Assembly (NCBI GenBank): GCA_038087875.1
Contig: CM075981.1
Location: forward strand, 2,542,001-2,606,000
Direction of reading: 5' to 3'
Source: Malacoraja senta
Taxonomy: Eukaryota
Length of the DNA: 64,000 nucleotides
The notes under the pieces are model-generated. The model saw only the letters and a program-made list of their open reading frames with translations, did not search any database and was not told the DNA's origin. Position numbers and translations under genes: made by a program. Below, in pieces: positions 5,301-52,926 of this stretch. Positions within the stretch are counted from its first letter, which is position 1. Each line of letters begins with the position of its first letter.

Positions 5301-8300
5301 CAGGCCCTTCTGCCCACAATGTGCGTGCCAAACATGACGGCAAGATAAACTCATCTCCTCTGTCTACACGTGATCCATATCCCTCCAATCCTTGTATATC
5401 TACAAGCCTCTTAAACACCACTTTCGTATCTACCTCCACCACCATCCCTGGCAGCACGTTCCAGGCACCCACTACTATCTCTGTATAAAAAACCCTGCAT
5501 ATCTCCTTTAAACTTGAACATGATGCCAAGGCCATCACTTATCTACCTGCACATCACCAACATCCCTCCATGCCCGGCATGATCATGGGCCTATCTAAAG
5601 GTCTTTTAAATGCCATTAACGTATCTGTTTCAACCACCACCCCAGCAGGTTCTGACTGTCTACCCTATCTATGCCTCTAGTGATTTTATAAACTTTTATC
5701 AAGTCACTCCTCAACCTCTGACATTCCAGAGGAAACAATGCACGTTTGTCCAACCTCTCCCTGTAGCTAATCCCCTCTAATCCAGGCAGCGCTCTGGTAA
5801 ATCTCCTCTGCACCGTCTCCAAAGCCTCCACATGCTTTCTGTAATGGAGATGGCCAGACCTGCACGCAATGCTCTAAATGCCTCCTGGCCAAAGACCTAC
5901 AGAGCTGCAAGTTGGCTTCCTGACTCTCACACTCAATGCCCCGACCGATAATGGCATTGAATGCATTAGGGTTGTGGATGGATCTTAATCATCAGGCTGG
6001 AAGCTCCCACCAATGAAATTGTGGAGCGATGAAAAACGAGTTCAAATACGACATCAAATTCATTAAACTCCCAAGATGAAAGCCCACAGGAAAAGTTGGG
6101 TTTCTTTGCGTGTGGAAGGACACTCACTTGCCGAGCTGAGGAACCTCGTAGCCAGTATCGATGTTGCTCATCCCACCAGCAACGGCAGCCGAGAGCAGGA
6201 GTCGTGGCTTTCCTGTGCTTTTCCCCTCGGCCTCGAAGGCAGCCATCAGCTCCTGTGGGTCAGAGAGATCGAGGGCTCCTTTAGCAAGAGATCAAGTCTA
6301 GTCTTAGGAAGGGCCCCGACCCGAAACATCACCTATTCTTTTTCCCGAGAGATGCTGCTTGACCCGCTGAGTTACTCCAACACTTTGTGTCAATTTCAAG
6401 TTTAGGCTGTGGGGCAGCAACTTTACCGCTGCACCACCGTGTCGCCCAAGAATGGGGAAGAAGCCTATTAATCCCCACTCAAAATGGTGCTTGGTTCAAA
6501 TTTTATTAAATTCTTAATTTCTGAATTCTTAAATTCCTTCGTGTAATCTGTGAAAATCTGACCTTGGTGATCTTGACAATAAGGTTACATTTATTGGATA
6601 AATTTGCAAGTCATGCAGCGTGGAAACAGACCCTTTGGCCCAACCTGCCCACACCGACCAATATGTCCCATCTACACTAGTACCACAAAGTGCTGGAGTA
6701 ACTCAGCCAGTCAGGCAGCATCTCTGGAGAACGTGGATAGGTGACGTTTCACAGAGTACTGGAGTAACTCAGCGGGTCAGGCAGCATCTGTGGAGATAAG
6801 GGTGGGTTTGGCCTCCGTTTGGCCCATTTATTTTAACGAAACCCATAGTGAGATGTACTTGACCGCACCTGAGCCAGGACAGTGTAGAGATGCTTGTCAA
6901 CGGGAGGACTTCCTCGAGATCCAGGATATTCCCAGTCGATGTCCAGACCGTCAAAGCTGTACCCTCTCAGGAAGGCGATGACTGACTTGATGAAGATTTG
7001 CCGAGTTCCTGACGAGCCGACCATCGCGGTGAATCTGCAGGAGGGGTGAATGTGGGGAGTGGAGTTAGAAATGAAATGTGCCGGAGACACAAGGAACTGT
7101 AGTAACAGCCGCTGAACTCAGTGACCCAGTGATTGTGCTGTTATATCCTATCATGTACAGATTCACCCAAGCCTTCGCTAAATGCTCGTGGCTAAAATAT
7201 TACTCCTTTCTCCTGCTATCATCCGAAGTTTCATGTGAAATTATTCTTTCTGAAAATGACGTTTAGTTCAGAGATACGGTGCGAGAACAGGCCCTTCGGC
7301 CCACCCACTCTGCACCGACCAGCGATCCCCACACTCTGACAATATCCTACACACACAAGGGACAATTTACATTTATAACAAGCCAATTAACCTACAAATT
7401 TGTACGTTTTTGGAGTGTGGGAGCAAATTGAAGATCTCTGAAAAACCCAGGAGGTCACAGGGAGAACGTACAAACTCCGTACAGACAGTACCCGTAGTCA
7501 GAATGGAACCTGGGTCTCTGGTGCTGTAAGCGCTGTTAGGCAGCAACTGTACCACTGTGCCACACACTATTGAAAGGATTCTTTCTGAAAATTATGTTAT
7601 TTTACTTTTTGGCAAGCAATATCCTATATTGTTCAAATTACAATTTGCAAACTGCTCTGTTTAATAATACTCCTGAGACAGTTCACTGTAAAATTATCCC
7701 CTCGATATTTATCTCTGTGTATATCATTACTAGAGCCAGGATGTTTAGGCACAAAAAAACTCTGAAATAGGCAAAAAGGCATATTAAAATTACAAAGAAG
7801 GCACGAAAAAGGCATTTATTGACAAAGGCATAAAAAGGCATGTATTTCCACCACCAAAATATGGTTACAAATGATAATATAATGTTATAGTAGATTAGAT
7901 GACCAAAGTTGCCTGGTTGCACATAATTACCGGCATTTTTTCAAATTATCTGGTGTTAAACTATGCCGTCTGTCAGACAGAATATGCTTCAGTTCTTTCT
8001 ACCTCAGCTGAGGTCACTGGTGCATACCAGAAACAAGCTACGGACTCTATATTCATGTTGATATCTTGTGCATTATACAATTACCTTTGAGAACTTTAGC
8101 TATGTTTTGTATTTCTTCAAGATCGTTGTTAGCTAAAATCACTTGCTCACATTTTCCTTGTATGTCTTTACCTACATCGCCAGGAACTTTACGAATATCG
8201 TCAGTTACTTTGTGGAAAACCTGCAAGTTATTCACTAATGTTTCGCCACCTTTCTCAAGGGAAGTGATAGCTTGTGGGAAGTTTGCAAAATTGGAAGCAA

Positions 8301-11300
8301 TAAATAGATGTTGGAGAAGACTGAACCAGTGGGCAGCAGCACGAATGAATGAACGACCGACGGTGGTGCCCCCGGTTTTGCCCCGGTGGTGGAAATGTTA
8401 TTGTCATTTATACTGTTAACACTTTAATAATAACATTAATATTAACGTGTTAATATAGAAAACGACATTGTAATCATGGTACAACTAGAGAAAATAGCAC
8501 GACCTTTTAGCATAACGGCAAAAAAAGGCTGATTTAGGCACTCGATCGTGAAAAAGGCATCTTGGTAAAATCATCAAAAAAGGCATGAAACGGCACTTGG
8601 CATTTATGGCAAAATTACCAAATACACCCACTGTTTACGTCAGGCACATGGAACTGCAGGTGCTGGTTTACAAAAAGAAAAGACACAAAGTGCTGGAGTA
8701 GCTCAGCAGGTCAGGCAGCATCTCTGAGGAACATGGATAGGTGACGACTCGGGTCGAGACCCTTCTTCAGGCTGAGTTACTGAGGAGTTACTCCAGCACT
8801 TTGTGTCTTTCAATATTCATTCCATATCACAGTCAATTGGAAAATAACTTTTTTTTAATCTAATGCTAACGTAAAAAGTTTCCATCTTACTTCTGGGTGC
8901 CAAAGTTCCAGCCTCCAATGGACAGCAGAGTCTTGAGGTTTGAATTCCTTAAAAAATGGACAAGATTTGGCTTTAGAATTATGTTTAGAACAACAGAACA
9001 TTTTTCAGAACTTCTCAGGAACTTCTGGATCTTCTGAGGTTTTTTGCCCCTTTGGTGTTACGTTTAGTTGAGGGGATTTGCCTCAGTCTGGATCTCAAGG
9101 GGGTCACAGAAAATGAGGTGAAAGTTCATGCAACAAGGCTTCATAAGCAATGGGCCAGTCTCACTATGTGGGCTGAAGGGCATATTTCCTCAATCTATGA
9201 CTCAATGATTCTGTTGGCCTGTCCAATAGCTTTCTCCTGAATATCCCCCTGGACCAAGTCACCTTTCAGACAGGGGAGGTGGATGAGATGAGAAAACCTT
9301 CAACAAATGGATGTGTAACAGGGTCATGTCAAAGACCCCGCTGACCATCGATCACCCATTCACACCAGTTCTACATTATCCCACTTTCTCATCCACTCCC
9401 TATGCACTTGGGGCAATTTGTAGAGGCCAATTAACCTACAAACCCTTTGTAATGTGGGTGAAAACCGGTAATCCAGAGAAAACGTACACCGTCACAGGGA
9501 GAACGTGCAAACTCCACACAAACAGTGCCCGAGGTAAGGATCGAACCCAGGTCTCTGGCGCGGCGAGGCAGTGGGTCTACCCGCTGCGTCACTGCGCCGC
9601 TCGGTACGTACAACAGATGGTATCTTGCCACATACTCTTCCAAACGACTTGTTCACTTAGATCGACCATTTCGAAGAGTTTGAAATGGAATGTTCATTAA
9701 ACACTGGATGTCTCTTTGCTTACAGCAAGCACCGGGGAATTAATGGTTAAATTTAACCCAATCAGACCCAAATCAGCAGGGTTCCACTCCACCCATTTGT
9801 CTCCACCAAGCTGTCTCTGAGAAGTTAGGCATCACCTTGGTACTTAAAGTCTAAATAACCCATACAGTGGGCTTATCCCACTGAACCGTCCTCTCACCAA
9901 CTAGAGAGAAGTCCTGACCTCCCATCTACCTCATTGGAGACCCTCGGACTATATTTAATCAGACTTCACTGGACTTTATCTTGCACTAAACATTATACCC
10001 TTTATCCTGTGTCTGTACACTGTGGACGGCCTGATTGTAATCATGTACAGTCTTTCTGCCGACTAGTTAGCACGCAACAAAAAGCTTTTTGTGGTACCAT
10101 GGTACACGTGACAATAATACACTAAATTAACTCTGGAATATGGGTTATGGAATATGGATTTGGGGAATATCCAATACAGTAACTGGTTAGCACACAACAA
10201 AAACTTTTCACTGTACCTCAGTACAGGTGACAATGAACTAAACTGCACAATGTAAATATCACAACAATGCCCGGCATTTGAGAAACAAGGTTAAGCCCCT
10301 GTCCCACTTTCCCGAGTTACTCACGAATTCTCCCGAGTTTTCCCCTTGATTCAAACTCGGAGATGCCAGCCGTAGGTACTCGGGGCTATTTTTTTTACTC
10401 GTGGACATTTTTTAACATGCTGAAAAAACGTCCCGACTTACCTGATGCCCCTAGTACCTACGGCTGGCATTACGAGCCGCGACAACATATCTACGGACTC
10501 GCTACGGATATTCTCCGAGTTTGAATCAAGGGGAAAACTCGGGAGAATTTGTGTGTAACTCGGGAAAGTGGGACAGAGACTTTAGTATTTATTCAGCGAC
10601 TGTACTTGTTCTTCAGGCTGTTGATCTCCTGGTAGAGTTTTGGGTCGTTCCATTCGTAGATGGCGATCTCATTGCTCTTCATTCCAGCGAAGGCGTAGAT
10701 GATGTGCGTGCAGAGACAAGGGTCCACGCTCTGGGGCATGTATTTACCCTCTCCTGGTCTGTACTGCGCCCAGTTGGTGAAGTAACACACCAGCCTGTAG
10801 GCAGAGCCTGGGCAAGGGAGAGACAGGGCGGTCAGGACAATGCCTCTGTGGCACTCACACAAAGCAAAGCAAAGCAAGGCTGCAAATGCACAAAGACTCA
10901 CCCAGTTGCAGGCAGGCCAGTAAGACCACCGCTGGAACAGAAAACACAGAGCAGAGTGTTAGGATTACGACATACCGTAATAAGTCAGGGATTGCGGGGG
11001 GAAGACAGGAGAATGGGGTTGAGAGGGAAAGATAGATCAGCCATGATTGAGTGGCTAGAGTGCACTAGATGGGCCGAATGGCCTAATTCTGCTCCCATCA
11101 CTTATGAAATTATGAAACCTTGGCTGTATTACGGCCTAGACACAATGAAAATGTTATATAAGTGGTTGGGAAGCTATGAAGAACTATCTTGTGGGCGGCA
11201 CAGTGGAGCAGCGGTAGAGTTGCTGCCTCACAGCGCCAGAGACCCAGGTTCGATCTTGACTATGGGTGTTGAACGTGTGTGGAATTTGTACATCAACTCT

Positions 11301-12319
11301 GCTATGCTTACTATTCTAGTATAAATTTGATTGTTCTGTTTCTGGTACATATGACAATAACACACCCTTAACTCCCTCTCCCTGTGACCAAGTGGGTTTT
11401 CTCCAGGAGCTCTGGTTTCCTCCCAAATCCCAAAGATGTGAGGGATTGAAGGTTAATTATCCCTCTGTAAAATTGCCCCTAGTGTGCAGGGAGTGGATGC
11501 ATACGTGGGATAACATTGAACTAGTCTGAAAGGCTGAACAAAGGTCAGCGTGGACTCCGTGGGCCGAAGGGCCTTGTTTCCATACTGTATCTCTAAACTA
11601 AACCTTTCCTATCCATGTACCCGTCCAAATGTATTTTAAATGTTGTTATTATACTTGCCTCATCTACCTCCTCTGGCAGATCGTAGCATATACTCACCAC
11701 CCTCTGGGCAACAGGTTAGTCATAGAGTCACACAGTGCAGAAACAGGCCATTTGGCCCAATTTGTCCATGCTGACCAAGATGCCCCACCTAAGCTTGTCC
11801 CAGTTGCCCCTGGATTCACCTTTAAATGTTTCCCTCTCACCTTAAGTCAATGCCCTGTAGTTTTAGACTCCCCTTCCCTGGAGAAAGGCAGAGACCATCC
11901 TTCATATCTCTGCCCCTCGTGATTTTCTAAATGTCTCTGAAGATTTTCATAGACTGCTGGAGTAATTCAGCGGGTCGGGCAACTTCTCCAGAGAGAAGGA
12001 ATGGGTGGTGTTTCGGGGAAGGGGGTCCGTTGGAAAATACAAAATATTAAGAAACTACGAACTGCAGAAGTTGATTTACACCAAAGATAGACACAAAGTG
12101 CTGGAGTATCGCAGCGGGTCAGGCAGCATCTCCGGAGATAAAGGTCAGGTAGAATTGAGACCTTTCTTCAGACACCTTTATAATAAAACTTGAGAAACAA
12201 TCTAAGCTGTTCTCATCCTCATGTAATGTCTAAACTTGATTCTTTCAAAAAGTATTCCAATATCAAAAGGAATTAAACAGCAAAAGGCTCTTACCTGTTC
12301 CAAGAAGTAGCTTTGCCAT
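2085..12319 (-). CDS. chia: Acidic mammalian chitinase-like GH18 chitinase with CBM14, copy A; 11 coding exons, 1419 nt, 472 aa
   Basis: All introns GT-AG. Exon sizes 25/30/202/57/166/125/127/183/117/139/248 follow the vertebrate CHIA layout. Signal peptide MAKLLLGTAVVLLACLQLGSA, FDGLDIDWEYP, MTYD, VWDLALDD, Gly-rich hinge, 6-Cys CBM14. CHIA versus CHIT1 orthology not formally tested. Confidence 0.93.
2874..3012 (-). CDS. Chitinase A exon 10
   Basis: VEWLKKNNFGGAMVWDLALDDFSGAFCHQGPYPLINTLHSGLGISG; AG/GT. Confidence 0.95.
3531..3647 (-). CDS. Chitinase A exon 9
   Basis: ICGFLNGATSEWNAPQDTPYAFKNGIWIGYDNIKSFGDK; AG/GT. Confidence 0.95.
4220..4402 (-). CDS. Chitinase A exon 8
   Basis: EYAMNYWKSKGAPVDKLNVGFPTYGHTF...GFLAYYE; AG/GT. 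Confidence 0.95.
4435..5005 (-). mobile_element. Rex1/Babar-like LINE 3' fragment (paralogous copy at 44445-44955)
   Basis: ORF 4658-4921 ...[39 protein letters not shown] resembles the DUF1891-type C-terminus. Confidence 0.7.
5093..5219 (-). CDS. Chitinase A exon 7
   Basis: IVDFFNVMTYDFYGPWSHVTGENSPLY...HFNV; AG/GT. Confidence 0.95.
6128..6252 (-). CDS. Chitinase A exon 6
   Basis: ELMAAFEAEGKSTGKPRLLLSAAVAGGMSNIDTGYEVPQLG (translated by hand); AG/GT. Confidence 0.95.
6869..7034 (-). CDS. Chitinase A exon 5 (catalytic DxxDxDxE intact, 6929-6952)
   Basis: FTAMVGSSGTRQIFIKSVIAFLRGYSFDGLDIDWEYPGSRGSPPVDKHLYTVLAQ. Confidence 0.97.
7731..8613 (-). mobile_element. Degenerate hAT-like DNA transposon remnant, present in copy A only
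   Basis: Absent at the homologous site in B (51660); flanked by a duplicated ATTAC; frameshifted FWYAPVTSAEVER/LKHILSDRRHSLTPDNL resembles the hAT dimerisation region. Confidence 0.6.
8891..8947 (-). CDS. Chitinase A exon 4
   Basis: NSNLKTLLSIGGWNFGTQ, 57 nt; AG/GT. Confidence 0.95.
10294..10581. mobile_element. PIF/Harbinger-type MITE (288 bp)
   Basis: TIRs AGCCCCTGTCCCACTTTCCCGAG / CTCGGGAAAGTGGGACAGAGACT, TTA target duplication; empty site in copy B near 52663. Confidence 0.85.
10606..10807 (-). CDS. Chitinase A exon 3
   Basis: SAYRLVCYFTNWAQYRPGEGKYMPQSVDPCLCTHIIYAFAGMKSNE..., 202 nt. Confidence 0.96.
10902..10931 (-). CDS. Chitinase A exon 2 (signal peptide)
   Basis: ttccag|CGGTGGTCTTACTGGCCTGCCTGCAACTGG|gtgagt, 30 nt, AVVLLACLQLG. 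Confidence 0.9.
12295..12319 (-). CDS. Chitinase A exon 1 coding part
   Basis: ATGGCAAAGCTACTTCTTGGAACAG|gtaaga, MAKLLLGT. Confidence 0.9.
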
Positions 12320-12354
12320 CTTGTTACTGTTGCTGACTGGACCTGAGCTGCCTC

Positions 12355-12480
12355 TTTTATACAATGAGCTTATCACGAACAATAATCCAATCTGTTTGTC
12401 GTTCCCTTTATCGGTAAGAAAGGGCAGTCACGATGATCCTCCTGCTATTTACAAAGGGAAAATAATAGTTGTTATCTTGA
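12355..12480 (-). promoter_or_regulatory. Chitinase A proximal promoter
   Basis: TATAAAA 12355-12361; GATA cores at 12369, 12407, 12472; forkhead-like TATTTAC 12446; conserved in copy B. Confidence 0.7.
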
Positions 12481-12589
12481 CTTCAATATTTTCTCTTCAA
12501 TAATACCTCGTCCCCTGTTCAATGTCATTCAGATTGTTCGCCTTCATTTTCACCGCAAGACTGTTTCTGAGCCTGATTGGAAATGACTT

Positions 12590-13320
12590 AGAAACATGGA
12601 AAGTAGGTCATTTAGCCAGCACCGCCATTCAATTATGTTCATAGCTATTCGTCCACAATTAGTACCCTTTTCCTGCTTTCTCCCCATATCCCTTGATTCC
12701 ATTAGCCCTATGAGCTAACTCTCTTGAAAACATCCAGTGAATTGGCCTCCACTGCCTTCTGAGGCACAGAATTCCATAGATTCATAACTCTCTGGGTGAA
12801 AAAGTTTTTCCTCATCTCAGTCCTAAATGACCTACCCCTTATTCTTAAACTGTGACCTGTGGTTCTGGACTCCCCCAACATCGGGGACATTTTTCCTGCA
12901 TCTTGCCTGTCCAATCCCTTAAGAATTTTGTATTTCTGTAAGATCCCCTCTCATTCTTCTAAATTCCAGTGAATATCAGCCCAGTCGACCCATTCTTTCA
13001 TCATAAGACAGTCCCGCCATCCCAGGAATTAACCTGGTGAACCTACGCTGCACTCCCTCAATACCAAGAATGCCCTTCCTCAAATTACGAGAGCAAAACT
13101 GCACACAATACTCCAGGTGTGGTCTTACCATGACCCTATACAACTGCAGGAGGACCTCCTTGCTCAGCTTCACAAACCCTTTCGCTATGTAGGCCAACAT
13201 GCCATTTGCTTTCTTCACTGCCTGCTGTACCTGCATGTTTACTTTTATTGGCTGGTGTACAAGCACACCCAGATCTCATTGCACCTCCCCTTTTCCTAAT
13301 CTGACAACATTCAGATAATA
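12590..13320 (-). mobile_element. CR1 LINE 3' fragment
   Basis: RPHLEYCVQF/EGVQRRFTRLIPG peptides in ORFs 12708-12914 and 12976-13266. Confidence 0.85.
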
Positions 13321-13784
13321 ATCTACATTCTCCCCATAACTCCTGACACCTGTACAAATCAACAATCTATCCATCTCTGCATTAAAAATATCCATCGACT
13401 TGGCCTCCACAGACAGCCTTCCATGGGAATGAATTCCACAGATTCACCACCCTCTTACTAAAGAAATTCCTCATCATCGCCTTCTTAAAAGAACGGCCTT
13501 TAATTCTGAGGCTGTGACCTCTTGTCTGAGACTTCCCCCACTAGTGGATTACGTGCAGGCTGAAGAGATTAGTTTAACTTCTCGGCATCATGATCAACAT
13601 CATGTTCAGCACGGACATTGTAGGCCGAAGGGCCTTTACCTGTGCTGCGCTGTTCCATGTTCTGTGTTCCATCGTCTTCTCAATCACAGTGGAGTGGGTG
13701 GGTGGCCAGAGCGAGACGTGGTGGAGACACAAGCAGGAAGTGTGGGGCGGCTGGTTGGCCGCTGGCAGCTGGGATGACGTTGTT

Positions 13785-14005
13785 GTTAAACGTTAACGGC
13801 TGATGCAAGGACACGTTTGGCAGAGGGTGGAGAGGTCGCGGCTGACTCCGGCCAATGCTCCGTGGGAGCCAGTGATTGGTTGAAAGTACGTGAGCGCAGG
13901 CAATGAGGGTCAGGAGAAGCCGGGAGTAAGTATAAACGGAGCGAGCGATGGCAGGAGATGTGAACAAGACCGGCCCCGTCACCCTGTGTGGAGACTCCGG
14001 AGCTG
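13785..14005 (+). promoter_or_regulatory. V-domain gene copy 1 promoter and non-coding exon 1
   Basis: HNF1-like GTTAAACGTTAAC 13785-13797, ERSE 13861-13879, TATAAA 13931, donor CTG|GTAACC at 14006. Confidence 0.65.
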
Positions 14006-14582
14006 GTAACCACCCCTGTGGATCCTTCGTGTCTGTGAGTGATGGGGGTGGGATTGTCTCTGTTCACTGTTCCCGCAGTTCAGAAGCCTGATAGCAGAGG
14101 GGAAGAAGCTGTTCCTGAGTCTGGTGGTGTGAGCTTTCAAGCTTCTGTACTTTCTGCTAGACAGGACCAGGGAGAAGGAGGAATGACCGGGGTGGGACAA
14201 GTGATGGAGTCATAGAGTCATACAGCGAGACCTTTGGCCCAACTTGCCCTCGCCCACCAACTTGTCCCATCAAAACTAGTTCCACCTGCCTGCTTTTGGC
14301 TCTTACCCCACTAATCTTGTCCTATCAATGTACCTGTCTAAATGTTTCTTAATCAATGTGATAGTACCTGCCTCAACTAACTCTCCCGGCAGCTCGTTCC
14401 AAAGAACCTCCACCCTTTGTGTAAAAAAGTCACCCCTCAGTTTCCCATTAAATCTTTCCCCCCCTCACCTTAAACCGATGTCCTCTGGTTCTCGATTCCC
14501 CAACTCTGGGCGGGTTCAGGGAATGTCATCATGAATCCTACTGAGTTGCAATAAGGTGACCCATTGTTTCACCCACAGGAAC

Positions 14583-15116
14583 ATGGGACTGCAGAGATGG
14601 ATAGGATTCATGGTCCTTGTGGAGATGGTGTGGCAGGTCTCCGGAACTGGAACAGGTCCGATCTCCAGAGAATGGGGAGAGGAAGCAAACTTGGCCAAGT
14701 GGAACGCACGGGCACCTCGGCAAGTCAACGATAAACAGCTTCCAAGATGCACGATCGAGACAGATTCTGATACATACAGACATCACCTATCATCGATTGA
14801 CATGAAGGTGCTCGTTGCATCTCTGGGTGGTTCTATTACGCTGCCCTGTAAAGCATCCACATCTGACGAATATCCCCTTTCTGTTAAATGGAGAAAAGAT
14901 GGTGTTGAAATTGCCATATTTAATACTAGAATTGCTGACGAATATCAGGGACTTGATGTCCGCTGACAGTTCGTGCATCGAGATCCCTTTAGTGAATGGG
15001 ACGGCTCATTGCTCCTGACAAGCATAAAAGAGAAAGATGAGGGGACATATTCCTGTGTCTGGTCCACTTTTAGTCGTAAGGAATGTGAAGAATTGGCCCG
15101 GCTGACAATCCAGTGA
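14583..15116 (+). pseudogene. Secreted single V-set Ig-domain gene, copy 1 (in-frame TGA at 14964-14966)
   Basis: Colinear with intact copy 2; TGG>TGA in R-W-Q; the downstream frame continues ...DGSLLLTSIKEKDEGTYSCVWSTFSRKECEELARLTIQ*. Confidence 0.85.
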
Positions 15117-15690
15117 AACCTCCCACTGATTCAGCAGGGCCCGTCCCAGGGTCAGTAGCAAAGTCTAGTTTAGTTTAGTTTAGTTCAGAGGTACAGCAGG
15201 GAAACAAGCCCTTCGGCCCACAGAGCCAAAGGGGACCAGTGATCACCCATACACTAGTTCTATCCCACACACTGGGTACAATTTACACAGACCAATTAAC
15301 CAACAAACATGCACGTCACAGGGATGTGGGAGGAAACCGGAGCACTCGGCGGAAACCCACATGATCTCAGTGCGAACGTGCAAACTCCGTACAAACAGCA
15401 CTCGGGAAATAGAGAGGGTGAATACACAGAGTATTTTGCCCAGAGTGCGGGAATCAAGAACCAGGGGACATAAGTTTAATATGAGGGGCAAATTTTGAAA
15501 GGAACCTGAGGGGCAACTTTTTCACTCAGAGGGGGGGGGTGTATGGAACGAGCTGCCAGAGGAGGTAGTTGAGGCAGGTACTACAACGACATTTAATGGA
15601 CACTTGGATAGGAATGGTTTTATGGGGATATGGGCCAAATGTAACGAAATAGGACTACCTTAGATGGGGTATATGGGTCTTCATGGGCAA

Positions 15691-15895
15691 TGTAGATTGG
15701 CTATTTCCTACTAGCCAATTATAGTGGTTGATAGTAGTGACTCCGCCTAATATGCGGTTTATATTATCAAGAGCTTGCCTACGCTAGTTAGTACGAGTAG
15801 CTGCTAGGAACTGTAATGTCCTGCAGATTTATGCTGCGAGTAGATTTAATAAACATGTGTTGTATCTTGATATGTGTTCGACTCAGCTCATTACA
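15691..15895 (+). mobile_element. Solo LTR (205 bp), identical copy at 21566-21770
   Basis: TG...CA ends, AATAAA, GGCAA/GGCGA target-site-like flanks; empty site in cassette 3 near 31795. Confidence 0.75.
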
Positions 15896-18800
15896 GGCGA
15901 GTTGGGCTGAAGGGCCTGTTTCCGTGCTGTATGACTCTATGACACTAAGTAGGGAATAGTAAAGGTATAAAGATGTGAGCGTGGATCGCATGCAGTGAGG
16001 AGAACTGATCCTGCTTGCACCGGCAAATTGACAATTAATGGAAATAAACTCTCTTCTGCCTGCCCTGAAGACAGCCGGTGTGAGTGATTCTTTGTACGCC
16101 AGCTTTGAGTTGGGTGTGAACTTTGTGCAACTGTTGCTCACTACGGGCAACATCGCCGGGTTCTATGAGCTGTGTCCATTATTGGTCATGACCCCATGGT
16201 GACGGAACAACTTGTGGAAAATCAGGAGTCTGCATATGTTGAGAACAGTAACAAAAATAAAAGGGAATGTGGGTCAGGCAGCATCTGTGGGGGAGCAACA
16301 GAGGCAACGTCTCAGAATGAAGATCCTTCAACAGGACCGGGCAAGAGAGGATGTTTGTCGGTGAAGTTGGGTGAATCACATGGTCTCAGGTGTCAAGAGT
16401 CTTGGGGCAAGAGTGTTGTATGTACCGACAATGGAACGATGAACTTGTTACCTGCAGCAGCAGAACAGGCTTGGAAACACCATACTCATTGATAACATTT
16501 AATAAACAGGTGGTCAAGGTGGCGCAGCGGTAGAGTTGCTGCCTTACAGCGCCGGAGACCTGAGTTCGATCCCCACTACGGGTCCTGTCTGTATGGAGTT
16601 TGTACGTTCTCCCAGTGACCTGCGTGGGTTTTCTACGAGATCTTCTGTTTCCTCCCACACTCCAAAGACGCAGAGGTTTGTAGGTTAATTGGCTTGGTAA
16701 ATGCTTTAAAAAAAATTGTCCCTAGTGGGTGTAGGATAGTGTTCATGTGTGGGGATCGCTGGTCGACGCGGACCCGGTGGGCCGAAGGGCCTGTTTCCGC
16801 GCTGTATCTCTAAAACTAAAACTAAAAGAAACTAAACAGAAAATGCAATTAATTTATAACCCCAATACTAGTGCAAAAAAGCCCAAAGTCCTTAGTGCAT
16901 CCAAAGACAGTCCATGGTTCATAGTTTAGTTACTGTTGTAGAACATAGAACAGTACAGCACAGGAACAGGCCCTTCGGCCCACAACGTGTGCTGAACATG
17001 ATGCCAAGACCAACTCTTATCTGCCTGCACATATCTACATCCCTCCATTCCCTGACATCCATGTGCCTATCCAAATGTCTCTTAAATGCCACTATAGTAT
17101 CTGACACCACTGGCAGCACGTTCCATACACCCACCACCCTACCTGTGAAAAAGTTACCCATCAGATTCCTATTGAATCCGATTGGAAAGACTGGGCATGT
17201 ATTAAACTGGAATTTAGGATGAGAGGGAATCTTATAGAAAGATATCAAATTATAAAAGGACTGGACAAGCTAGATGCAGGAAAAATATTCCCAATGTGGA
17301 AAATTGGGGGAGTCCAGAACAAGGGGGCCACAGTCTAAGAGTTAAGGAAAGGCCATTTAAAACTGAGATTTTTTCTGAGATGAAAACTGAGGGGTTTTTC
17401 ATCTCAGTCCTAAATGGCCGACCCCTTATTCTTAAACTGTGACCCTTGGTTCTGGACTCCACCAACATCGGGAACATTTTTCCTGCATCTATCTAGTCTG
17501 TCCAATCCCTTAAGAATTATATATGTTTTTATAAGTTCCAGTCGCATCCTAAATTCCAGTGAATACAAGCACAGTCGATCCATTCTTTCATCATATGTCA
17601 GGGGTGGAAGATTGCAACCTTCACCTGGTCCGCCCTGTTTTGACTAATGCAATCAACTCGACGCGCACAAACAGAAGATCAAATAGAACAAGTTGTCCTA
17701 CAATTTTAGGCTGTGCACGCCACACGAAAGAAGAAGAAGATCATATGTCAGTCCCGCCATCCCGGGAATTAACCTGGTGAACCTACGTTGCACTCCCTCA
17801 ATAGCAAGAATGCCCTTCCGCAAAATGACAGCGGAGGGCCGCCACTACAGAGACATCCAATAGACCTGATAGAATGATATAAAATTATGAGAGGCGTAGA
17901 TAGCGGAAACAACCAGAAGCAATTTCCCAAAAGCTTTGGAGAGGGTGCAGAAGAAGTTTCCCAGAATGATGCCTGGATTGGAGGTTGTTAGTGATAAAGA
18001 CTGGTTGGATAGTTAGATTAGATTAGATTCCTTTATTTGTCATTCAGACCTTTCGGTCTGAACGAAATTTCGTTGCCTGCAGTCATACATATAATAATAA
18101 ATAACAAAACATACAATAAACCCAAATTAACATCCACCACAGTGGGTTCACCAGGCACCTCCTCACTTTGAGGCAAAAGTCTTAAAGTCTCTGTCTCTTC
18201 CCTCTTTGTTCATCCTCTGCGCTAGGGCGATCCAAGCTTCTGATGTTGTGACCCCGTCGGGTGATGGTAAGTCAGTCCCGCGGCTGAACCCGTGCTCCGC
18301 GACGGGCCGGTTCAAACTCCGCGGCCTGGGGTGGCCGAAGCTGCCGAAGCTGCCGCCCTCCGGTCCAGCGGACGCAGCTGTCAGTTGCGGGAGCTCCAGA
18401 AAAACAGGTCACCCACCTGTGACCTGCGAGCTCCCGATGATGTCGTCCACTGGGCCCGCGGCCGAGCCCTGGATTCAGGTCGCCACCAGTGTCTTTGGTC
18501 GCCACCGCAGCCCCAAAGTCGGCCAGCCTCGCGTTGGTAAGTCCTGGCTCTGCCTCCGGAGCCTCGAGGTCGGTCGGTCGCAGTTGGAGGCCGTCAGCTC
18601 CGCCATTAGGCCTCAGCGCAGACGGAGGCAGAGAAGGGGGATACGACAAGAAAAAGTCGCATTCCCCGAAGGAAGAGACAAAAATCATGTTTCACCCCCC
18701 ACCCCCCCACCCCACACATACACAACCCAATAAACTAAAATGTAACTAAAACAGGACAAAAGAAAACAACAACAAAAGTAAAAACAGACGGACTGCAGGC

Positions 18801-19849
18801 GAGCCGCAGCTGTTCAACAGCGCTGCCACTTCCGGAGTCTTGGATTGTTTTCTCTAGAACTTCAGATGTTGAGGGGAGACCTGACAGAAGGTTATAAAAT
18901 TATGAGAGCCAGATAGGGGAGACAGAACCAATTTCGCAGGTTGGAAATGCCAAAGACTAGAGGGCATCGCTTTAGGGTAGGAGGCTTTCAAGAGAGAGTT
19001 AGATAGAGCTCTTAAAGATAGCGGAGTCAAGGGATATGGGGAGTAGGCAGGAATGGAGTACCGATTGTGGATGATCAGCTATGATCACAGTGAATGGGGG
19101 TGCTGGCTCGAAGGGCCGAATGGAAAACTCCTACACCTATTGTCTATTGTCTATTGAGATAGGACAAATTTGAAGATGTGCAGGGCACAGAGGGTGGTGG
19201 GTGCCTGGAACCCGCTGCTGTGGGTGGTGGAAGCAGACACAATAGTTAACAGTCTTTATCAAAAAAATCTCTTGCATATGTAGGGAATAGAGATGGATCA
19301 TGCGCAGGCGGAGATTAGCTTAACTTGGCATCATGTTCAGCACGGACCTTGTGGGCCAAAGGGCCTGTTCCTGTGCTGTACTGTTCCATGTTCTATGTTA
19401 CATAGTCTTCTCAATCACATCTTGAGAAGAACATTTTCCAGAGGTGCCCTGGTACCACCAGTGTGACATTCATTGTACCTGCTGCAGCCAATGAGTGTGT
19501 TGTGTATACAGCCAGAGGAGAAGATGAGATTTATGTGGAGTTTCATTTTGTAATCATTATTTATTTAATGTCATAGTGTAATAGAGTCATAGAGTGATAC
19601 AGCGTGGAAACAGGCCCTTCGACACAACTTGCCCACACTGGCCAACATGTCCCAGTTACACTAGTCCCACCGGTTGGTCCATATCCCTCCAAATCTGACC
19701 TATACCTGTTCCTGTCTAACTGTTTCTTAAACGTTGGGATAGTTTCTGCCTCAACTGCGATGGTTGACCAGAGCCAGACGTGGTGGAGACACAAGCAGGA
19801 TGTGTGGGGCGGCTGGTTGGCCGCTGGCAGCTGGGATGGCGTTGTTCTT

Positions 19850-20070
19850 GTTAAACGTTAACGGCTGATGCAAGGACACGTTTGACAGAGGGTGGAGAGG
19901 TCGCGGCTGACTCCGGCCAATGCTCCGTGGGAGGCAGTGATTGGTTGAAAGTACGTGAGCGCAGGCAATGAGGGTCAGGAGAAGCCGGGAGTAGGTATAA
20001 AAGGAGCGAGCGATGGCAGGAGATGTGAACTATACCGGCCCCATCACCCTGTGTGGAGACTCCGGAGCTG
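19850..20070 (+). promoter_or_regulatory. V-domain gene copy 2 promoter and non-coding exon 1
   Basis: HNF1-like 19850-19862, ERSE 19926-19944, TATAAAA 19996-20002, donor at 20071, acceptor CACAG| at 20427. Confidence 0.7.
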
Positions 20071-20431
20071 GTAACCACTCCTGTGGATCCTTCAAGTGTC
20101 TGTGAGTGATGGGGTGGGATTGTCTCTGTTCACTGTTCCCCCAGTTCAGAAGCCTGATAGCAGAAGGGAAGAAGCTGTTCCTGAGTCTGGTGGTGTGAGC
20201 TTTCAAGCTTCTGTACCTTCTGCTAGACAGGACCAGGGAGAAGGAGGAATGACCGGGGTGGGACAAGTGATGGAGTCATAGAGTCATACAGCGAGACCTT
20301 CGGCCCAACTTGCCCACGCCCACCAAATGTCCTCTGGTTCTCGATTCCCCAACTCTGGGCGAGTTCAGGGAATGTCATCATGAATCCTACTGAGTTGCAA
20401 TAAGGTGACCCATTGTTTCACCCACAGGAAC

Positions 20432-20965
20432 ATGGGACTGCAGAGATGGATAGGATTCATGCTCCTTGTGGAGATGGTGTGGCAAGTCTCCGGAACTGGA
20501 ACAGGTCCGATCTCCAGAGAATGGGGAGAGGAAGCAAACTTGCCCGGGTGGAACGCACGGGCGTCTCGGCAAGTCAACGATAAACAGCTTCCAAGATGCA
20601 CGAACGAATCAGATTCTGATACATACAGACATCACCTATCATCGATTAACATGAAGGTGCTCGTTGCATCTCTGGGTGGTTCTATTACGCTGCCCTGTAA
20701 AGTATCCAAAGCTTACAATTATCCCCGGTTTGTTAAATGGAGTAAAGATGGTGTTGAAATTGCCTGGTTTCATGTTAGAATGCATGCCCAATATGAGGGA
20801 CCTGATGTCCGCTGGCAGTTCGTGCATGAAGAACCCTCTTATAAACGGGACGGCTCATTGCTCCTGACAAGCATAAAAGAGAAAGATGAGGGGACATATT
20901 CCTGTGTCTGGTCCACTGCTTGTCGTAGGGATTGTGAAGAATTGGCCCGGCTGACAATCCAGTGA
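20432..20965 (+). CDS. Secreted single V-set Ig-domain protein (177 aa, single coding exon), copy 2, intact
   Basis: Predicted signal peptide MGLQRWIGFMLLVEMVWQVSG, about 50-aa linker, V domain with SITLPC (B), VKW (C), DGSLLL (E), DEGTYSC (F); no TM segment. Confidence 0.85.
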   Translation: MGLQRWIGFMLLVEMVWQVSGTGTGPISREWGEEANLPGWNARASRQVNDKQLPRCTNESDSDTYRHHLSSINMKVLVASLGGSITLPCKVSKAYNYPRFVKWSKDGVEIAWFHVRMHAQYEGPDVRWQFVHEEPSYKRDGSLLLTSIKEKDEGTYSCVWSTACRRDCEELARLTIQ

Positions 20966-22131
20966 AACCTCCCACTGATTCAGCAGGGCCCGTCCCAGGG
21001 TCAGTAGCAAAGTCTAGTTTAGTTTAGTTCAGTTCAGAGGTACAGCAGGGAAACAAGCCCTTCGGCCCACAGAGCCAAAGGGGACCAGTGATCACCCCAT
21101 ACACTAGTTCCATCCCACGCACAGGGTACAATTTACACAGACCAATTAACCTACAAACATGCGCGTCTCTGGGATGTGGAAGGAAACCGGAGCACCCGGC
21201 GGAAACCCACACGATCACAGTGAGAACGTGCAAACTCCGTACAGACAGCACCCGGGAAATAGAGAGGGTGAATACACAGAGTATTTTGCCCAGAGTGCGG
21301 GAATCAAGAACCAGGGGACATAAGTTTAATGTGAGAGGGGCAAATTTTGAAAGGAACCTGAGGGGCAACTTTTTCACTCAGAGGGGGGGGGGGGGGGGTG
21401 GGTGTATGGAACAAGCTGCCAGAGGAGGTAGTTGAGGCAGGTACTACAACGACATTTAATGGACACTTGGATAGGTCGATGGATAGGAATGGTTTTATGG
21501 GGATATGGGCCAAATGTAACGAAATAGGACTACCTTAGATGGGGTATATGGGTCTGCATGGGCAATGTAGATTGGCTATTTCCTACTAGCCAATTATAGT
21601 GGTTGATAGTAGTGACTCCGCCTAATATGCGGTTTATATTATCAAGAGCTTGCCTACGCTAGTTAGTACGAGTAGCTGCTAGGAACTGTAATGTCCTGCA
21701 GATTTATGCTGCGAGTAGATTTAATAAACATGTGTTGTATCTTGATATGTGTTCGACTCAGCTCATTACAGGCGAGTTGGGCTGAAGGGCCTGTTTCCGT
21801 GCTGTATGACTCTATGACACTAAGTAGGGAATAGTAAAGGTATAAAGATGAGCAGCGTGGAAGGTGTGAGCGTGGATCGCATGCAGTAAGGAGAACTGAC
21901 CCTGCTTGCACCGGCAAATGTACGATTAATGGAAATAAACTCTTCTGCCTGCCCTGAAGACAGCCGGTGTGAGTGATTCTTTGTACGCCAGCTTTGAGTT
22001 GGGTGTGAACTTTGTGCAACTCTTGCTCACTACGGGCAACATCGCCGGGTTCTATGAGCTGTGTCCATTATTGGTCATGACCCCATGGTGACGGAACAAC
22101 ATGTGGAAAATCAGGAGTCTGCAGATGTTGA

Positions 22132-25521: not shown

Positions 25522-28500
25522 TGTTGGAATAACTTAGATCCCATACAGTAATTAAGATCCAAAGACTTTATTAGCATTACAGCATAGGTAACTTCATCTT
25601 AATACATAACTCAAGACTGAGGGAGAAAAGGGCTGAGAAGCTTTATGTTAAACTAGTGGGCGTAGCTACAAAGTATGACTCATAACACGAGTGACACTGA
25701 TCTACATCCTCCCTCTTAAAAAAATTAAATGTCAGTACAAAACCATTGACTAAATAAGGCATGCATAGCAATTGATAATAAGCTGGAGGAAAGTCAAACA
25801 TAGCCCGGGTACTTCACGGTGTGCTTGCAAACACGACCAGCATGTGTGCGATTAAAACCTTCTCCAATTTCCCAACCGCGGACAGAGCCGGTGGCTGCAC
25901 GGGTGACGGAGATTGTAGCAGCATTCCCGGTGATGAAACAGGGGACTTCAGCACAGGCGGAGGGAGGGTCGTCGGCATTGGCAAAGCAGCCGCTCCAGAA
26001 GTGTGTTGTTGTGCTGGTGTAGGCGGATCGATGCCGCTGGACACAGATGGCAGTACACTTGTACGGTCTGGATAATACGGTGGCGGATTCGGCTCATTCA
26101 CAGGCAGGATATGTTGTCTGTTACGCCTGTAGGAGCCGCCATCGTCACTGACCAGATATGTGCGTGGCTCAGAAGCAGTTCCAGAAATTACACCGATACG
26201 GCCTTTGTCAGTTTGCAAAAGGACCACCTGCTCCTTGGTTAATGGTGGCAGTGGCCTACTTGTCTTGTCATACCACTGTTTTTGAATGTCACGCTTTTGT
26301 TGTAACCTGGACTGGACTTCCAATGGTGGTACCACTTGTGGGATCAATGCCTGATCCACCACTGGCACCGTGGCTCGGGTCAAATGTTGTGCGGGTGAAC
26401 CCAAAATGGGGCCGTGGGAGATGTTATGTTGGTTGAGCAGATCCAGGTTAACGTCGGAATTAGCTCTGTACGATCGTTCCATGAGCTGTTTGGCACTCTT
26501 GACAGCCCGCTCAGCCAGTCCATTCGACTGTGGATATTCAGGGCTGCTGGTGATGTGGCAAAAACCCCAGCGTGCAGCAAACTCCTTGAAGTGTTGGCTG
26601 GTAAATTGACTGCCGTTATCAGATAACAGTATGCACAGAGCTCCGTGGTCTGCATAATGGCGAGCAAGCTTCGAAACTACCCCGCGAGAAGTGGGGCTCC
26701 TAAGAAAATCAATGTCAAACCATCCAGAATACGAATCGACGAGTACCAGGTACTGCTTGCCATACCATTCAAATATGTCAGTTGCCACGGTAGACCACAG
26801 GAGGGCAGGAGCTGGATGTGAAAGAAGTGGTTGCTTTTGTTGATGAGGTGCCAAGCTGTTACACACTGCACAGGACGCCACATTCTCGGTGATGTATTCG
26901 GCCATGCCAGGCCAGTAAAACATGTTTCTTGCCCGTAGGACGGTGGCTACAGTCCCTGGGTGTCCTGCATGTACAGCGTCGAAATACTTGCTGTGTAGCG
27001 AGGCATTGACCACAGCCTTGTGTCCTTTTCCAATAATGTCATCCTGCAGTACTAGCTCATCGCGCACGGCAAAGAAAGGCCGAACTGACAGCAGAACGTT
27101 GTAGTGTTTGTCTGGCCAGCCGCGCTTAATGACGGAGGCGAGCGACCATAAGGTACTGTCAGCAGCAGTGTGGGCAACCAAATCCTCCATACAGGACGAG
27201 GGAATAAAAGACACAGTCATTACGATAAAGTCATCATCTGGCGAGGGCAGACCCTCACAGATCTTCCGGGGTGCACGCGAGAGAGTGTCAGCCAGGTGCA
27301 TATCCTTACCACGTTTGTAGGAGAGGCTTGAATCGGTTTGTTAAAGATGCTGATCAGAGGTTGGTGGTCGGTTTCAATCGTGACCGTATGTCCAAAGATA
27401 AAGTCGTTAAATTTCTTGCAGGCGAAAACAGCCGCCAGTAGCTCTTTCTCAATTTGGACATATCGTTGTTCTGTGTCAGTCAGTGCGCGAGGCATTGGCA
27501 ACAGGCTTATTGCCGCTACCGTCATTTTGAAGACATGCTGCGCCCAGTCCGTGTTGTGAAGAGTCACGTCAATGTGACCCGGTTGTTTAGGATCAAAGTA
27601 AGCGAGAGTAGGAGCACAAGACATCTGCTGCTTAAGAGTGTTGAACGCTCTCTGCTCTTGCTCGTGCCAGGTCCAAGCAGTGTCTTTGTGTGTAAGCTGT
27701 TGCAATGGGGCTGATATTTCACTGAAGTCTGGAATAAATTTGCTCAAGTAGTTCACCATGCCAAGGAATCTTTGTAGACTGAGCACGTGTGTGGGTGCTG
27801 GGAGCTCGTTGATGGCACTGGTTTTTGCCGGATCAGTTTTTAGGCCGTCCTTAGTGAACATATGCCTTTCACCTCACTTACCCTGAATTTGCATTTTTTA
27901 GGGTTTTGCTTGAGGTTGATGGCCTTGGCGCGATCCAGGACCTTTGTCAGATTAGCATCGTGTTCTTCGACAGTTCGTCCCGCAATGAGGATGTCATCCA
28001 CTACAATGGAGCATGGGTAACCCGCAAACAACTGCTCCATAGCTTGTTGAAATACTTCACTGGCAGAGCTTATGCCAAAAGGCATGCGAAGAAATCTGTA
28101 TTGCCTGAACGGTATGCTGAAGGTGGTTAACTTGGAGGAGTTGTTTTCCAGCGAAATGCCAGAATGAACTCTTGGCATCTAGTACAGTGAATACAGTTGC
28201 TTCAGCCATCTGCGCTGCAATCTTGTCCACAATGCGCATGGGATAGTGAGGTCAATTAATGGCTGTGTTTTCAAGTCCTTAGGTTTGATACAAATCCATA
28301 TTTCGTCTTTATTCTTCTTCGTTGCCATAACCATGGTGGAGACCCAATCCGAGGGGTCAGCGACGGGAGCAATCACACCTAGAGACACCATTCTGTTGAG
28401 TTCACTTTGAACATGGTCCGGCATAGCATGGGGAATCTTGTGTGCTGTACGGACAACTGGGATTATCTCAGCGTCAATGGTAATTGTGTACTTAACAGGC

Positions 28501-32281: not shown

Positions 32282-32801
32282 TCACTCCATTAACAGCCAG
32301 GTCTCTACTTCACAATTCCCTCTTTTCTCAGAGGTCCAAACGCAGGAATATATCGCTTCATCGTCCTCTTGTGTCCGTGTCAGGAGCAACGAGGCGTCCC
32401 GATGCCAGTGGACGTTTTGATGCACGAACTTCCAATGGACATCAAACCCTTGATAATGTGCAAAGGTACGATATCTGGCAATGGAAACACCATCTTTAAT
32501 CCACGAAACAGAGCTCACTTCACCGTATCTGCGGATACTTTACAGTACAGCGTTACAGAACCACCCGGAGATGCAATGATCACATTATATCTAATAATGC
32601 CAGGCTGATCGCTGTCAGAACCTGGCTTGTCAATGCATTCTGGAAGCCGATCTTCATTGACTGGCCGAGGCTCCCGTGCGTTCCACCGGGGCAAGTTGCT
32701 TCCTCTCCCCATTCCCTGGAGATCAGACCTGTTCCAGTTCCGGAGACCTTGCCACACCATCTCCACAAGACCATGAATCCTGTCCATCTCTGCAGTCCCA
32801 T
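32282..32801 (-). pseudogene. Secreted single V-set Ig-domain gene, copy 3 (inverted, four 1-nt indels)
   Basis: Pieces in ORFs 32580-32828, 32515-32820 and 32282-32518; SVTLYC, VSW, DASLLL, DEAIYSC. Confidence 0.8.
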
Positions 32802-40649: not shown

Positions 40650-40788
40650 CTCCAGAGATGCCAAGGCCAGAGTGCAGAGTCTTGATGAGAGGGTAGGGTC
40701 CCTGGTGACAGAAGGCACCAGAGAAGTCATCCAGAGCCAGATCCCAGACCATAGCTCCTCCAAAGTTGTTGTTCTTCAGCCACTCAAC
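40650..40788 (-). pseudogene. Chitinase B exon 10
   Basis: VEWLKNNNFGGAMVWDLALDD...; AG/GT. Confidence 0.9.
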
Positions 40789-47620: not shown

Positions 47621-47680
47621 AAGGATAGGTTTGGCCCATTTATTTTAACGAAACCTATAGTTAGATGTACTTGACCGCAC

Positions 47681-52889: not shown

Positions 52890-52926
52890 CTGGGCAAGGG
52901 AGAGACAATGCCTCTGTGGCACTCAC

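Follow-up and report, generated by a model that had tools for sequence, protein, structure and literature searches.

How do two neighbouring genes for the same immunoglobulin (Ig) V domain come to differ in 28 codons without a single purely silent difference? The question is posed by a stretch of 64,000 nucleotides from Malacoraja senta (NCBI GenBank assembly GCA_038087875.1, contig CM075981.1, positions 2,542,001 to 2,606,000 of the forward strand), referred to here as the window, which holds three copies of a V-type gene, termed W1, W2 and W3. Coordinates are those of the window unless another sequence is named. The initial annotation, made from the sequence alone, attributed the differences between W1 and W2 to positive diversifying selection on ligand-binding loops that resemble complementarity-determining regions (CDRs) but are germline-encoded. 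The analysis presented here points the same way, and we consider it likely that the pair reflects diversifying selection for differing binding specificities, combined with an exchange of loop-sized patches, in an apparently batoid-only family of V domains that are predicted to be secreted.

Divergence of the W1 and W2 V domains

The comparison is based on the following intervals.

14583-15116 (+): W1 (copy 1), open reading frame (ORF) in exon 2 (exon start 14579), read by translation as signal peptide, RxxR propeptide, linker and V domain; TGA at 14964-14966 breaks the frame
14802-15116 (+): W1 V-domain segment
20432-20965 (+): W2 (copy 2), intact ORF of 177 codons, read by translation as signal peptide, propeptide ending R-A-S-R, linker with Cys56 and V domain
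20651-20965 (+): W2 V-domain segment

Codon-by-codon comparison of 14802-15116 with 20651-20965 reveals 37 base differences in 28 of 105 codons. Twenty-seven of these codons carry replacements, one carries a nonsense change and none is silent-only, which reproduces the count of the initial annotation exactly. The nonsense difference falls in V codon 55, which reads TGA in W1 (14964-14966) versus TGG in W2, and with this in-frame stop W1 is a pseudogene. All codons that specify the same amino acid in both segments (76 of 76) are identical base for base, bearing out the earlier description of a base-identical framework, and the leader and linker (codons 1-73 of both ORFs) contain 7 replacements and 3 silent changes, just as had been estimated.

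The location of the variable residues was taken from strand and loop assignment on an AlphaFold (AF2) model built from ten paralogues. The model has a predicted local distance difference test (pLDDT) score of ~90 for residues 74-177, with residues 1-73 disordered, and places strands at 75-79, 85-87, 98-105, 108-114, 118-121, 128-130, 143-145, 154-162 and 168-176, a full V-type set that includes C' and C''. Full-protein numbering equals the V codon plus 73. Inspection of the model together with the codon comparison places the differences in clusters in BC, C'/C'', D-E and F-G, as the initial annotation had described them.

14853-14882 (+): W1 BC-loop patch, V codons 18-27, 7 codons differing from W2 (codon comparison; AF2 strands B 85-87 and C 98-105)
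14916-14954 (+): W1 C'-C'' patch, V codons 39-51, 9 codons differing (codon comparison; AF2)
14979-14999 (+): W1 D-E patch, V codons 60-66, 6 codons differing (codon comparison; AF2)
15069-15083 (+): W1 F-G loop patch, V codons 90-94 (FSRKE), 4 codons differing (codon comparison; AF2)
20702-20731, 20765-20803, 20828-20848 and 20918-20932 (+): W2 hypervariable patches
Residues 91-100: differing positions of the BC loop and the start of strand C
Residue 104: differing position in strand C
Residues 112-124: differing positions of C', C'' and the loop after C''
Residue 128: differing position at the stop codon (strand D)
Residues 133-139: differing positions of the D-E segment
Residues 163-167: differing positions of the F-G loop

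Within the 35 codons of the loop segments (BC, C'-C'', D-E and F-G with their adjoining strand ends), 33.5 replacement and 1.5 path-averaged silent changes were counted, and the other 69 framework codons hold 1 replacement and 0 silent changes. The BC, C'-C'', D-E and F-G loops share one end of the V sandwich, the end with which antibodies and T-cell receptors bind ligand, and they correspond to CDR1, CDR2, hypervariable region 4 (HV4) and CDR3 of antigen receptors.

The duplicated unit in which the two genes lie pairs 13699-14267 with 19761-20332 and 14478-16242 with 20327-22131, and its flanks serve as the standard of comparison. Outside the ORF, intervals of 100 bases contain 0-9 mismatches (~2.6-2.7% overall), in contrast to 10, 21 and 7 mismatches in those of the V domain. 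The V domain differs at 37 of 315 bases (11.7%) versus 49 of 1783 in the flanks (Fisher p = 1e-10); for replacement sites alone versus the flanks, Fisher p = 1e-12, and replacement divergence is ~6 times flank divergence. When 37 mutations were placed at random (kappa 2), an outcome without a silent-only codon arose in 0.035% of 20,000 simulations. Nei-Gojobori (NG86) counting gives the V domain 1.5 silent (sd) and 34.5 replacement (nd) differences, dS of 0.022, dN of 0.160 and dN/dS of 7.4, where the signal plus propeptide and the linker give 0.75-0.80. Pairwise maximum likelihood (ML; GY94, F3x4, own code) estimates omega at 13 for the V domain, with a likelihood-ratio test (LRT) statistic against omega = 1 of 11.7 (p = 6e-4), and at 0.98 for the prepro part (prepro plus linker).

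These figures bear directly on two ways in which the differences could have arisen from mutation unaided. If W1 had simply decayed neutrally once the nonsense mutation had occurred, its TGA would be expected to be real and most changes would be expected on its branch, and both are the case: the TGA at 14964-14966 was seen again in two other samples, and most changes do fall on the W1 branch. Relaxed constraint, however, also predicts an omega near 1, an even spread and a flank-like rate, whereas omega is 7-13, framework codons show 1 difference in 69 against 35 in 35 for loop codons, and the sixfold excess of replacement over flank divergence remains; such decay is highly improbable as the source of the pattern. 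A local process that raises the mutation rate of the loops, such as AID/APOBEC-like deamination or error-prone repair, could account for differences at 33% of the bases in loop codons and for a loop synonymous divergence that exceeds that of the framework family-wide. Error-prone repair leads to tandem substitutions in shark antibody genes. In W1 and W2, adjacent substitutions show no excess (9 observed versus 13.4 expected), the transition:transversion count of 15:22 in the V domain is close to the 25:24 of the flanks, and silent changes are strongly deficient even within the loops, all of which leaves targeted mutation with very little probability.

Reality and history of the two copies

The initial annotation had named an assembly artefact as a way in which its reading could fail, and both copies were checked against two further public runs of the best-matching organism (X1 and X2), the contigs of which were compared with the window. 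W1 14824-15027, stop codon included, is present as a contig with 0 differences in X1 and in X2. The W2 core is likewise present with 0 differences, as an X1 contig that equals 20673-20876 and an X2 contig that equals 20735-20876. In X2, depths are 29.1 and 36.5 for the two V cores and 66.2 and 55 for the contigs that abut them (k-1 overlap). The cores thus have about half the depth of the abutting contigs, and therefore share flanks. Both runs appear to be genomic DNA, since promoter, intron and short interspersed nuclear elements (SINEs) are all covered and the cores stand at half depth.

An artefact would take the form of two haplotypes of one locus set in tandem, or of patches that are consensus errors. 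Core depths of about half those of the shared contigs fit this account as well, in that two alleles at one locus would look alike, and three small patches of the assembly are unseen in X1 or X2. Against it stand the exact match of both cores in two samples distinguishable from one another at 20604, the unique flanks of the two copies (12092-13700 versus 18902-19760, and 16250 onward versus 22140 onward), and the locus of Leucoraja erinacea (hereafter Leucoraja), where the same order of chitinase gene, V, V and inverted V is found. There is also no assembly gap between the copies, the sole run of N being 335-804. We accordingly give an assembly artefact almost no weight.

The history of the pair was read from a shared insertion, from the flanks and from the third copy.

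15689-15895 (+): 205-bp insertion, W1 copy, inside 300 identical bases (15605-15904 = 21480-21779)
21564-21770 (+): 205-bp insertion, W2 copy
32309-32801 (-): W3 (copy 3), frameshifted pseudogene of the same family, recognised by tblastn matches in three frames and by synteny; positional counterpart of Leucoraja LOC129708946 (P0004)

The identical 205-bp element that the initial annotation had assigned to both copies is a real insertion, embedded in the 300 identical bases of each. It starts with TG, ends with CA and contains AATAAA, features with which it may be a solo long terminal repeat (LTR), and it is confined to W1 and W2, being absent from W3 and from the Leucoraja and Rhinoraja loci. 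The upstream flank of W1 (12092-13700) is orthologous to that of Leucoraja P0003 (Le_P3), whereas the W1 V domain is W2-like and unlike that of P0003. The 3' flanks of W1 and W2 diverge by ~2.6%, compared with 7-9% between the window and Leucoraja. Together, the shared insertion, the flank divergence and the P0003-type upstream flank indicate that, once the Leucoraja lineage had split off, W2-like sequence supplied W1 with its coding part and 3' flank, by duplication or by conversion. An old paralogy with retained loops was considered and rejected, as the loops of W1 show no similarity to those of Le_P3 or of either member of the Leucoraja tandem pair Le_a/Le_P1.

Polarisation by the Leucoraja sister genes indicates that W2 has kept the outgroup state at ~9-10 sites and W1 at ~2, which places ~80% of the polarisable changes on the W1 branch. 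W1 is the fast-changing copy because its branch is the longer one (0.325 versus 0.09 substitutions per codon for W2) and because it has kept fewer outgroup states.

Selection and gene conversion across the family

To extend the comparison beyond a single pair, site models were fitted with our own ML implementation of GY94 to 11 sequences and 104 codons, with M1a and M2a only and with naive empirical Bayes (NEB) posteriors. Under M0, the V domain of the family has an omega of 1.26. M2a (lnL -2581.3) is preferred over M1a (lnL -2612.0) with an LRT of 61.4 (p = 5e-14) and assigns 34% of sites an omega of 3.4; the initial annotation had allowed that dN/dS might not exceed 1 with more sequences, and with these 11 it does. 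Sites with a posterior >0.9 fall mainly in BC, C', C'', D-E and F-G. The LRT of M2a versus M1a is 47.8 when W1 is left out and 31.8 when both W1 and W2 are left out, and it is not significant (3.6) for the signal plus propeptide region. Positions at which W1 and W2 differ are also the more variable ones among nine other paralogues (entropy of 1.95 versus 1.17 bits, p = 1.3e-5), and they overlap the differing positions of the Leucoraja pair Le_a/Le_P1 (odds ratio 4.8, p = 0.003), whose V domain has an omega of 1.7-2.9. That the family is under diversifying positive selection at structurally coherent loop sites is supported by these results, and the original proposal of such selection on CDR-like germline loops is upheld by the pairwise omega of 7-13, the loop location and the family-wide LRTs taken together.

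Gene conversion, tracts of which the initial annotation had suggested looking for, was seen among the paralogues, both as a mosaic gene in Leucoraja and as patches in the window; the selective interpretation stands, in qualified form. Whichever two of the Leucoraja genes Le_a, Le_P1 and LOC129708938 are compared, the identity of their flanks is 98-99.7%. Across V-core positions 220-440, Le_P1 and LOC129708938 are 100% identical and Le_a differs by 8.6%, while across positions 440-540 LOC129708938 switches from the Le_a type (2 sites) to the Le_P1 type (8 sites, including one three-way site) and back to the Le_a type (2 sites). LOC129708938 is thereby shown to be a mosaic of its two neighbours, and conversion among paralogues to be active. 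A related pattern separates the assembly from X1 and X2, where both V cores are flanked by a W1-type linker and a W1-type F-G loop. These samples lack three patches of the assembly, namely the W2 F-G patch at 20918-20932 (5 changes, ACRRD), the W2 linker at 20604-20648 and 'LAKW' of W1 at 14694-14698, and at each of them X1 and X2 carry the version of the other copy. Loop-sized blocks therefore vary between individuals. Part of the loop diversity was probably moved or imported as patches and not made by single substitutions.

The reverse of loop diversity is found at the 5' end of the genes, where an upstream and prepro cassette is held nearly constant.

13699-14267 (+): W1 5' cassette with putative promoter and non-coding exon 1 (~13960-14037), by homology with W2; exon 1 inferred from Leucoraja gene models and the W2 sequence
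19761-20332 (+): W2 5' cassette with putative promoter; non-coding exon 1 ends at the donor at 20103 (from the sequence)

The W1 cassette (13699-14267) is 95.5% identical to that of W2 (19761-20332) and 94-95% identical to the matching cassette of every Leucoraja V gene. More broadly, the cassette that runs from ~880 bp upstream of the ATG to the propeptide shows 94-97% identity across all paralogues of the window and Leucoraja, more than the 91-93% of syntenic non-coding DNA between the two species. Among paralogues, residues 1-46 are almost invariant and V domains are 40-68% identical; dS of the signal plus propeptide is <=0.1 even where V-domain dS is 0.6, and tree length is 0.70 substitutions per codon for the signal plus propeptide versus 6.0-6.8 for the V domain.

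Several of these observations, beginning with the active conversion among paralogues, count against diversifying selection as the explanation of the pair. Pooled over family pairs, loop pN/pS is ~1, and the loops exceed the framework in synonymous divergence (0.51 versus 0.33). Recombination inflates site-model LRTs, and with conversion present and a home-made ML implementation those of the family may be inflated. The difference in branch length makes the signal of W1 and W2 largely the burst of one lineage, and with one member a pseudogene the comparison is not one of two working genes. In the Leucoraja pair, the V-domain dS of 0.069 exceeds the flank divergence of ~1%, which fits imported or older loops better than fresh point mutation. 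Lastly, W3, the positional orthologue Le_P3 and ten to eleven paralogues from Leucoraja and Rhinoraja yielded no donor for the W1 loops, and donors could lie among this genome's other copies outside the window.

Carried to its conclusion, this line of argument makes the V domains a passive mosaic, in which loops were imported by conversion from distant paralogues, some of them beyond the window, other conversions wiped neutral differences from framework and flanks, and selection is needed only against loop homogenisation or not at all. The switch of type within 100 nt in LOC129708938, amid near-identical flanks, is what such a process would produce, and so are the linked changes that X1 and X2 lack (5 within 15 nt in the W2 F-G loop, 4 in the W2 linker and 3 in the W1 propeptide). 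The 5' cassette is likewise homogenised across paralogues, two propeptide forms, LAGR and LPGW, occur across paralogues and species alike, and elevated synonymous divergence marks both the loops of the family as a whole and, by comparison with its flanks, the V domain of the Leucoraja pair. However, paralogues with a dS of 0.3-0.6 should import silent differences along with their loops, and the 35 loop codons of W1 and W2 hold 0 silent-only differences where ~7 are expected if neutral. The loop states of W1 are also unmatched in every paralogue searched, and conversion alone gives no reason for the variable sites to be loop sites in every lineage. A passive mosaic is on this evidence unlikely.

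Under diversifying selection combined with patch exchange, the explanation we prefer, W1 would have received its coding part and 3' flank from W2-like sequence, by replacement or duplication, later than the split from Leucoraja, and W1 and W2 would thereafter have diverged almost solely by replacements in BC, C'-C'', D-E and F-G, mostly on the W1 lineage. Selection would act on variants supplied both by point substitution and by short, loop-sized gene conversion between paralogues, and the same recombination would prevent the framework and 3' flank, and most of all the promoter-to-propeptide cassette, from diverging. W1 would later have gained its nonsense codon, and the pseudogene may still serve as a conversion partner.

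A batoid family of predicted secreted V domains

Exon 2 encodes the whole protein, which comprises a hydrophobic N-terminus (MGLQRWIGFMVLVEMVWQVSG), an R-A-P-R or R-A-S-R segment, a linker and one Ig domain with an immediate stop codon. The acceptor cacccacag|G is found at 14578/14579 in W1 and at 20427/20428 in W2, and the gene models of Leucoraja join a short first exon to an acceptor immediately 5' of the ATG. A translated N-terminal extension of 31 residues (MAGDEN...), as those models have it, was rejected: the corresponding ATG of W2 (20013) lies ~10 nt past TATAAAA, and the frame is broken in Rhinoraja. Exon 1 is thus probably non-coding and the extension probably not translated, as judged from the sequence. 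Putative promoter elements of W2 are the HNF1-like palindrome GTTAAACGTTAAC at 19850-19862, a reverse endoplasmic reticulum (ER) stress response element (ERSE; CGTGG-N9-ATTGG) at ~19927-19945 and TATAAAA at ~19996-20003, and all three elements were assigned in the W1 cassette by homology with W2. The W1 intron contains a 211-bp stretch (14267-14478) that is not in W2 (an alignment gap), and the very high depth of reads over its 3' edge points to a SINE-like insertion.

The propeptide ends in RxxR (R-A-P-R, R-A-S-R, R-E-P-R or R-V-P-R) in 11 of 12 paralogues and in R-Q-V-R in the relative from Narcine bancroftii. In Leucoraja LOC129708938 (L008:10640-11179), seven clustered unique changes at ORF nt 132-139 turn A-P-R-Q into A-Y-F-K, with loss of RxxR, and LOC129708937 (P0003) is likewise without RxxR (S-Y-W-H). 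In W2 numbering, Cys56 of the linker is invariant and the V domain carries Cys89-Cys158 as the canonical B-F disulfide pair, Trp103 as the strand-C tryptophan, and Cys168; Cys89, Trp103, Cys158 and the strand-F segment D152-E-G-T-Y-S-C158, of the form D-x-G-x-Y-x-C, are invariant or conserved in 10 of 10 aligned paralogues. The Pfam V-set profile PF07686 scores 34.1 bits (cut-off 26), and the Ig_3 and ig profiles are above threshold as well.

The ORF ends directly past strand G, the same point at which the NCBI models in Leucoraja and Rhinoraja end, and no hydrophobic run of >=17 residues that could span a membrane is present in any frame within 2.5 kb downstream of the ORFs. Strand G is encoded in line with the V exon, that is to say in the germline. 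No CACAGTG heptamer of a recombination signal occurs in 14400-15500, and the sole one near W2 lies at 21216, 250 bp past the stop codon. The predicted product is a small, non-rearranging single V domain, for which secretion and cleavage of the propeptide are deduced from these features.

Full-length relatives were found by word-based and exhaustive profile searches in three species only: Leucoraja erinacea (LOC129708937-46), Rhinoraja longicauda and Narcine bancroftii, an electric ray. The exhaustive profile search otherwise returned mostly generic multi-Ig proteins, the Narcine protein being its sole full-length relative; a query with that protein retrieved no further relatives, and the ESM Atlas only generic V-set clusters. 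The Narcine relative, named 'nectin-1-like' by NCBI, is more distant than the others. Its locus (L009:10001-11935) holds one copy with a similar two-exon layout, a longer propeptide and T-Y-P in the F-G loop, a motif typical of the PVR family, and neither a second copy nor a chitinase gene was found there within 10 kb. Leucoraja, by comparison, has at least 9 copies in ~112 kb of CM054030.1, and GH18 chitinase genes, in some cases with CBM14, are interspersed among them. The order chitinase, W1, W2 and inverted W3 in the window equals that of chitinase, LOC129708937 (P0003), LOC129708938 (P0157) and inverted LOC129708946 (P0004) in Leucoraja. In the window itself, two chitinase-like (GH18) copies flank the V genes, at ~2600-11300 (-) and ~40400-53800, and the intact GH18 catalytic motif DGLDIDWEYPG is found only in the first, at ~6952 (-). 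In the data searched, the family thus appears to be restricted to batoids and expanded in skates. The databases searched label its members only 'uncharacterized' or 'nectin-1-like', and full-text searches of the literature retrieved no description of the family.

The closest known system is the first (V) domain of the nectin/PVR (CD155) family, together with TIGIT, CD226 and JAML. Foldseek identifies nectin-1, -2 and -4 and the first domain (D1) of CD155 as the closest solved structures (TM-score ~0.8 by target, ~24% identity), and nectins and CD155 make up both its PDB top 20 and its top Swiss-Prot models; by sequence profile, hmmsearch against the PDB places JAML, CD226 and PVR nearest. The likeness is thus one of the V fold of the first domain, in structure and in sequence profile. 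Members of the nectin/PVR family are nevertheless membrane-bound V-C-C proteins with a transmembrane helix and a cytoplasmic tail, the nectins being encoded by conserved single-copy genes, whereas the skate family has one V domain with a stop past strand G, a propeptide, the Cys56/Cys168 pair, tandem expansion and hypervariable loops. The interface motifs of the nectin/PVR group are (V/I)(S/T)Q in strand C, A-x6-G in C'-C'' and T(F/Y)P in F-G. By eye, in alignment A1 plus P0084, the skate genes appear to lack all three, and Narcine has T-Y-P before the F-G cysteine.

Comparison with diversified V and Ig families yields likenesses of another kind. The VCBPs of amphioxus and Ciona are also a secreted, germline, non-rearranging and diverse V multigene family; they combine two V domains and a chitin-binding domain in one polypeptide, whereas the skate protein has a single V domain as its only domain, CBM14 is confined to the separate neighbouring GH18 genes (in Leucoraja), and the relationship shown is that of the V-set fold only. 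Teleost NITRs, the soluble SITR (PMC3031540) and mammalian KIR, LILR, SIRP and CEACAM resemble the skate family as tandem germline V-type or Ig families with birth-and-death evolution, conversion and selected ligand-contact loops. NITR, KIR, LILR, SIRP and CEACAM proteins are mostly membrane receptors with signalling tails, in contrast to a bare secreted V domain behind a conserved prepro cassette. Rearranging V genes and UrIg/UrIg2 share the V-set fold with C' and C'' and variability in BC, C'-C'', D-E and F-G. Unlike rearranging V genes, the skate family has no recombination signal by the V exon, a germline strand G, no constant domains and no J-like FGxG. The UrIg and UrIg2 genes of elasmobranchs are non-rearranging, and UrIg2 has the structure V-C1-C2-C3 (PMC12227049); identity with them was rejected, as that architecture marks a different family.

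The arrangement of constant and variable parts, in turn, recalls conotoxins, defensins and mussel MgCRP-I (PMC3862624, PMC4018336, PMC4558851), which pair a near-invariant prepro region, silent sites included, with a divergent, selected mature part. Their mature part is a short cysteine-rich peptide, whereas that of the skate family is an Ig V domain of 100 residues with its variation in CDR-like loops. The skate genes constitute a germline Ig superfamily (IgSF) family under diversifying selection, which is a known kind of evolution in an apparently undescribed family. Two designs that are usually separate are united in it, the CDR-like hypervariable V domain and the conserved prepro with a hypervariable mature part. 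The locus is also a compact example of conversion and diversifying selection acting together, with a built-in control in which the 5' cassette is homogenised and the loops are diversified.

We infer that the proteins bind ligands and take part in humoral or mucosal defence. No living lineage with antibodies and T-cell receptors is older than the cartilaginous fish, and non-rearranging V families in these fish bear on the evolution of variable-domain recognition and on its complements. If microbial or dietary ligands are bound, the family would add a new class to the humoral or mucosal recognition molecules of vertebrates, and its small, stable single domains would form a natural library of binders. 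A bolder version of this idea, which we regard as distinctly unlikely, is that skates and rays possess a germline repertoire of secreted antibody-like V domains, separate from the rearranging receptors, whose loops are diversified by selection and by the shuffling of loop-sized patches among tandem genes and pseudogenes such as W1, and which work with chitinases at the gut or another mucosal surface like the VCBPs of protochordates. The shuffling would then be a germline counterpart of the pseudogene-templated conversion that takes place somatically in chickens. In this version, work alongside chitinases at such a surface is suggested by the position of the genes among chitinases and by the HNF1-like and ER-stress promoter elements. 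Between W2 and W3, the window also contains an ORF of 495 codons at 25814-27301 (-), which may be a transposable-element gene.

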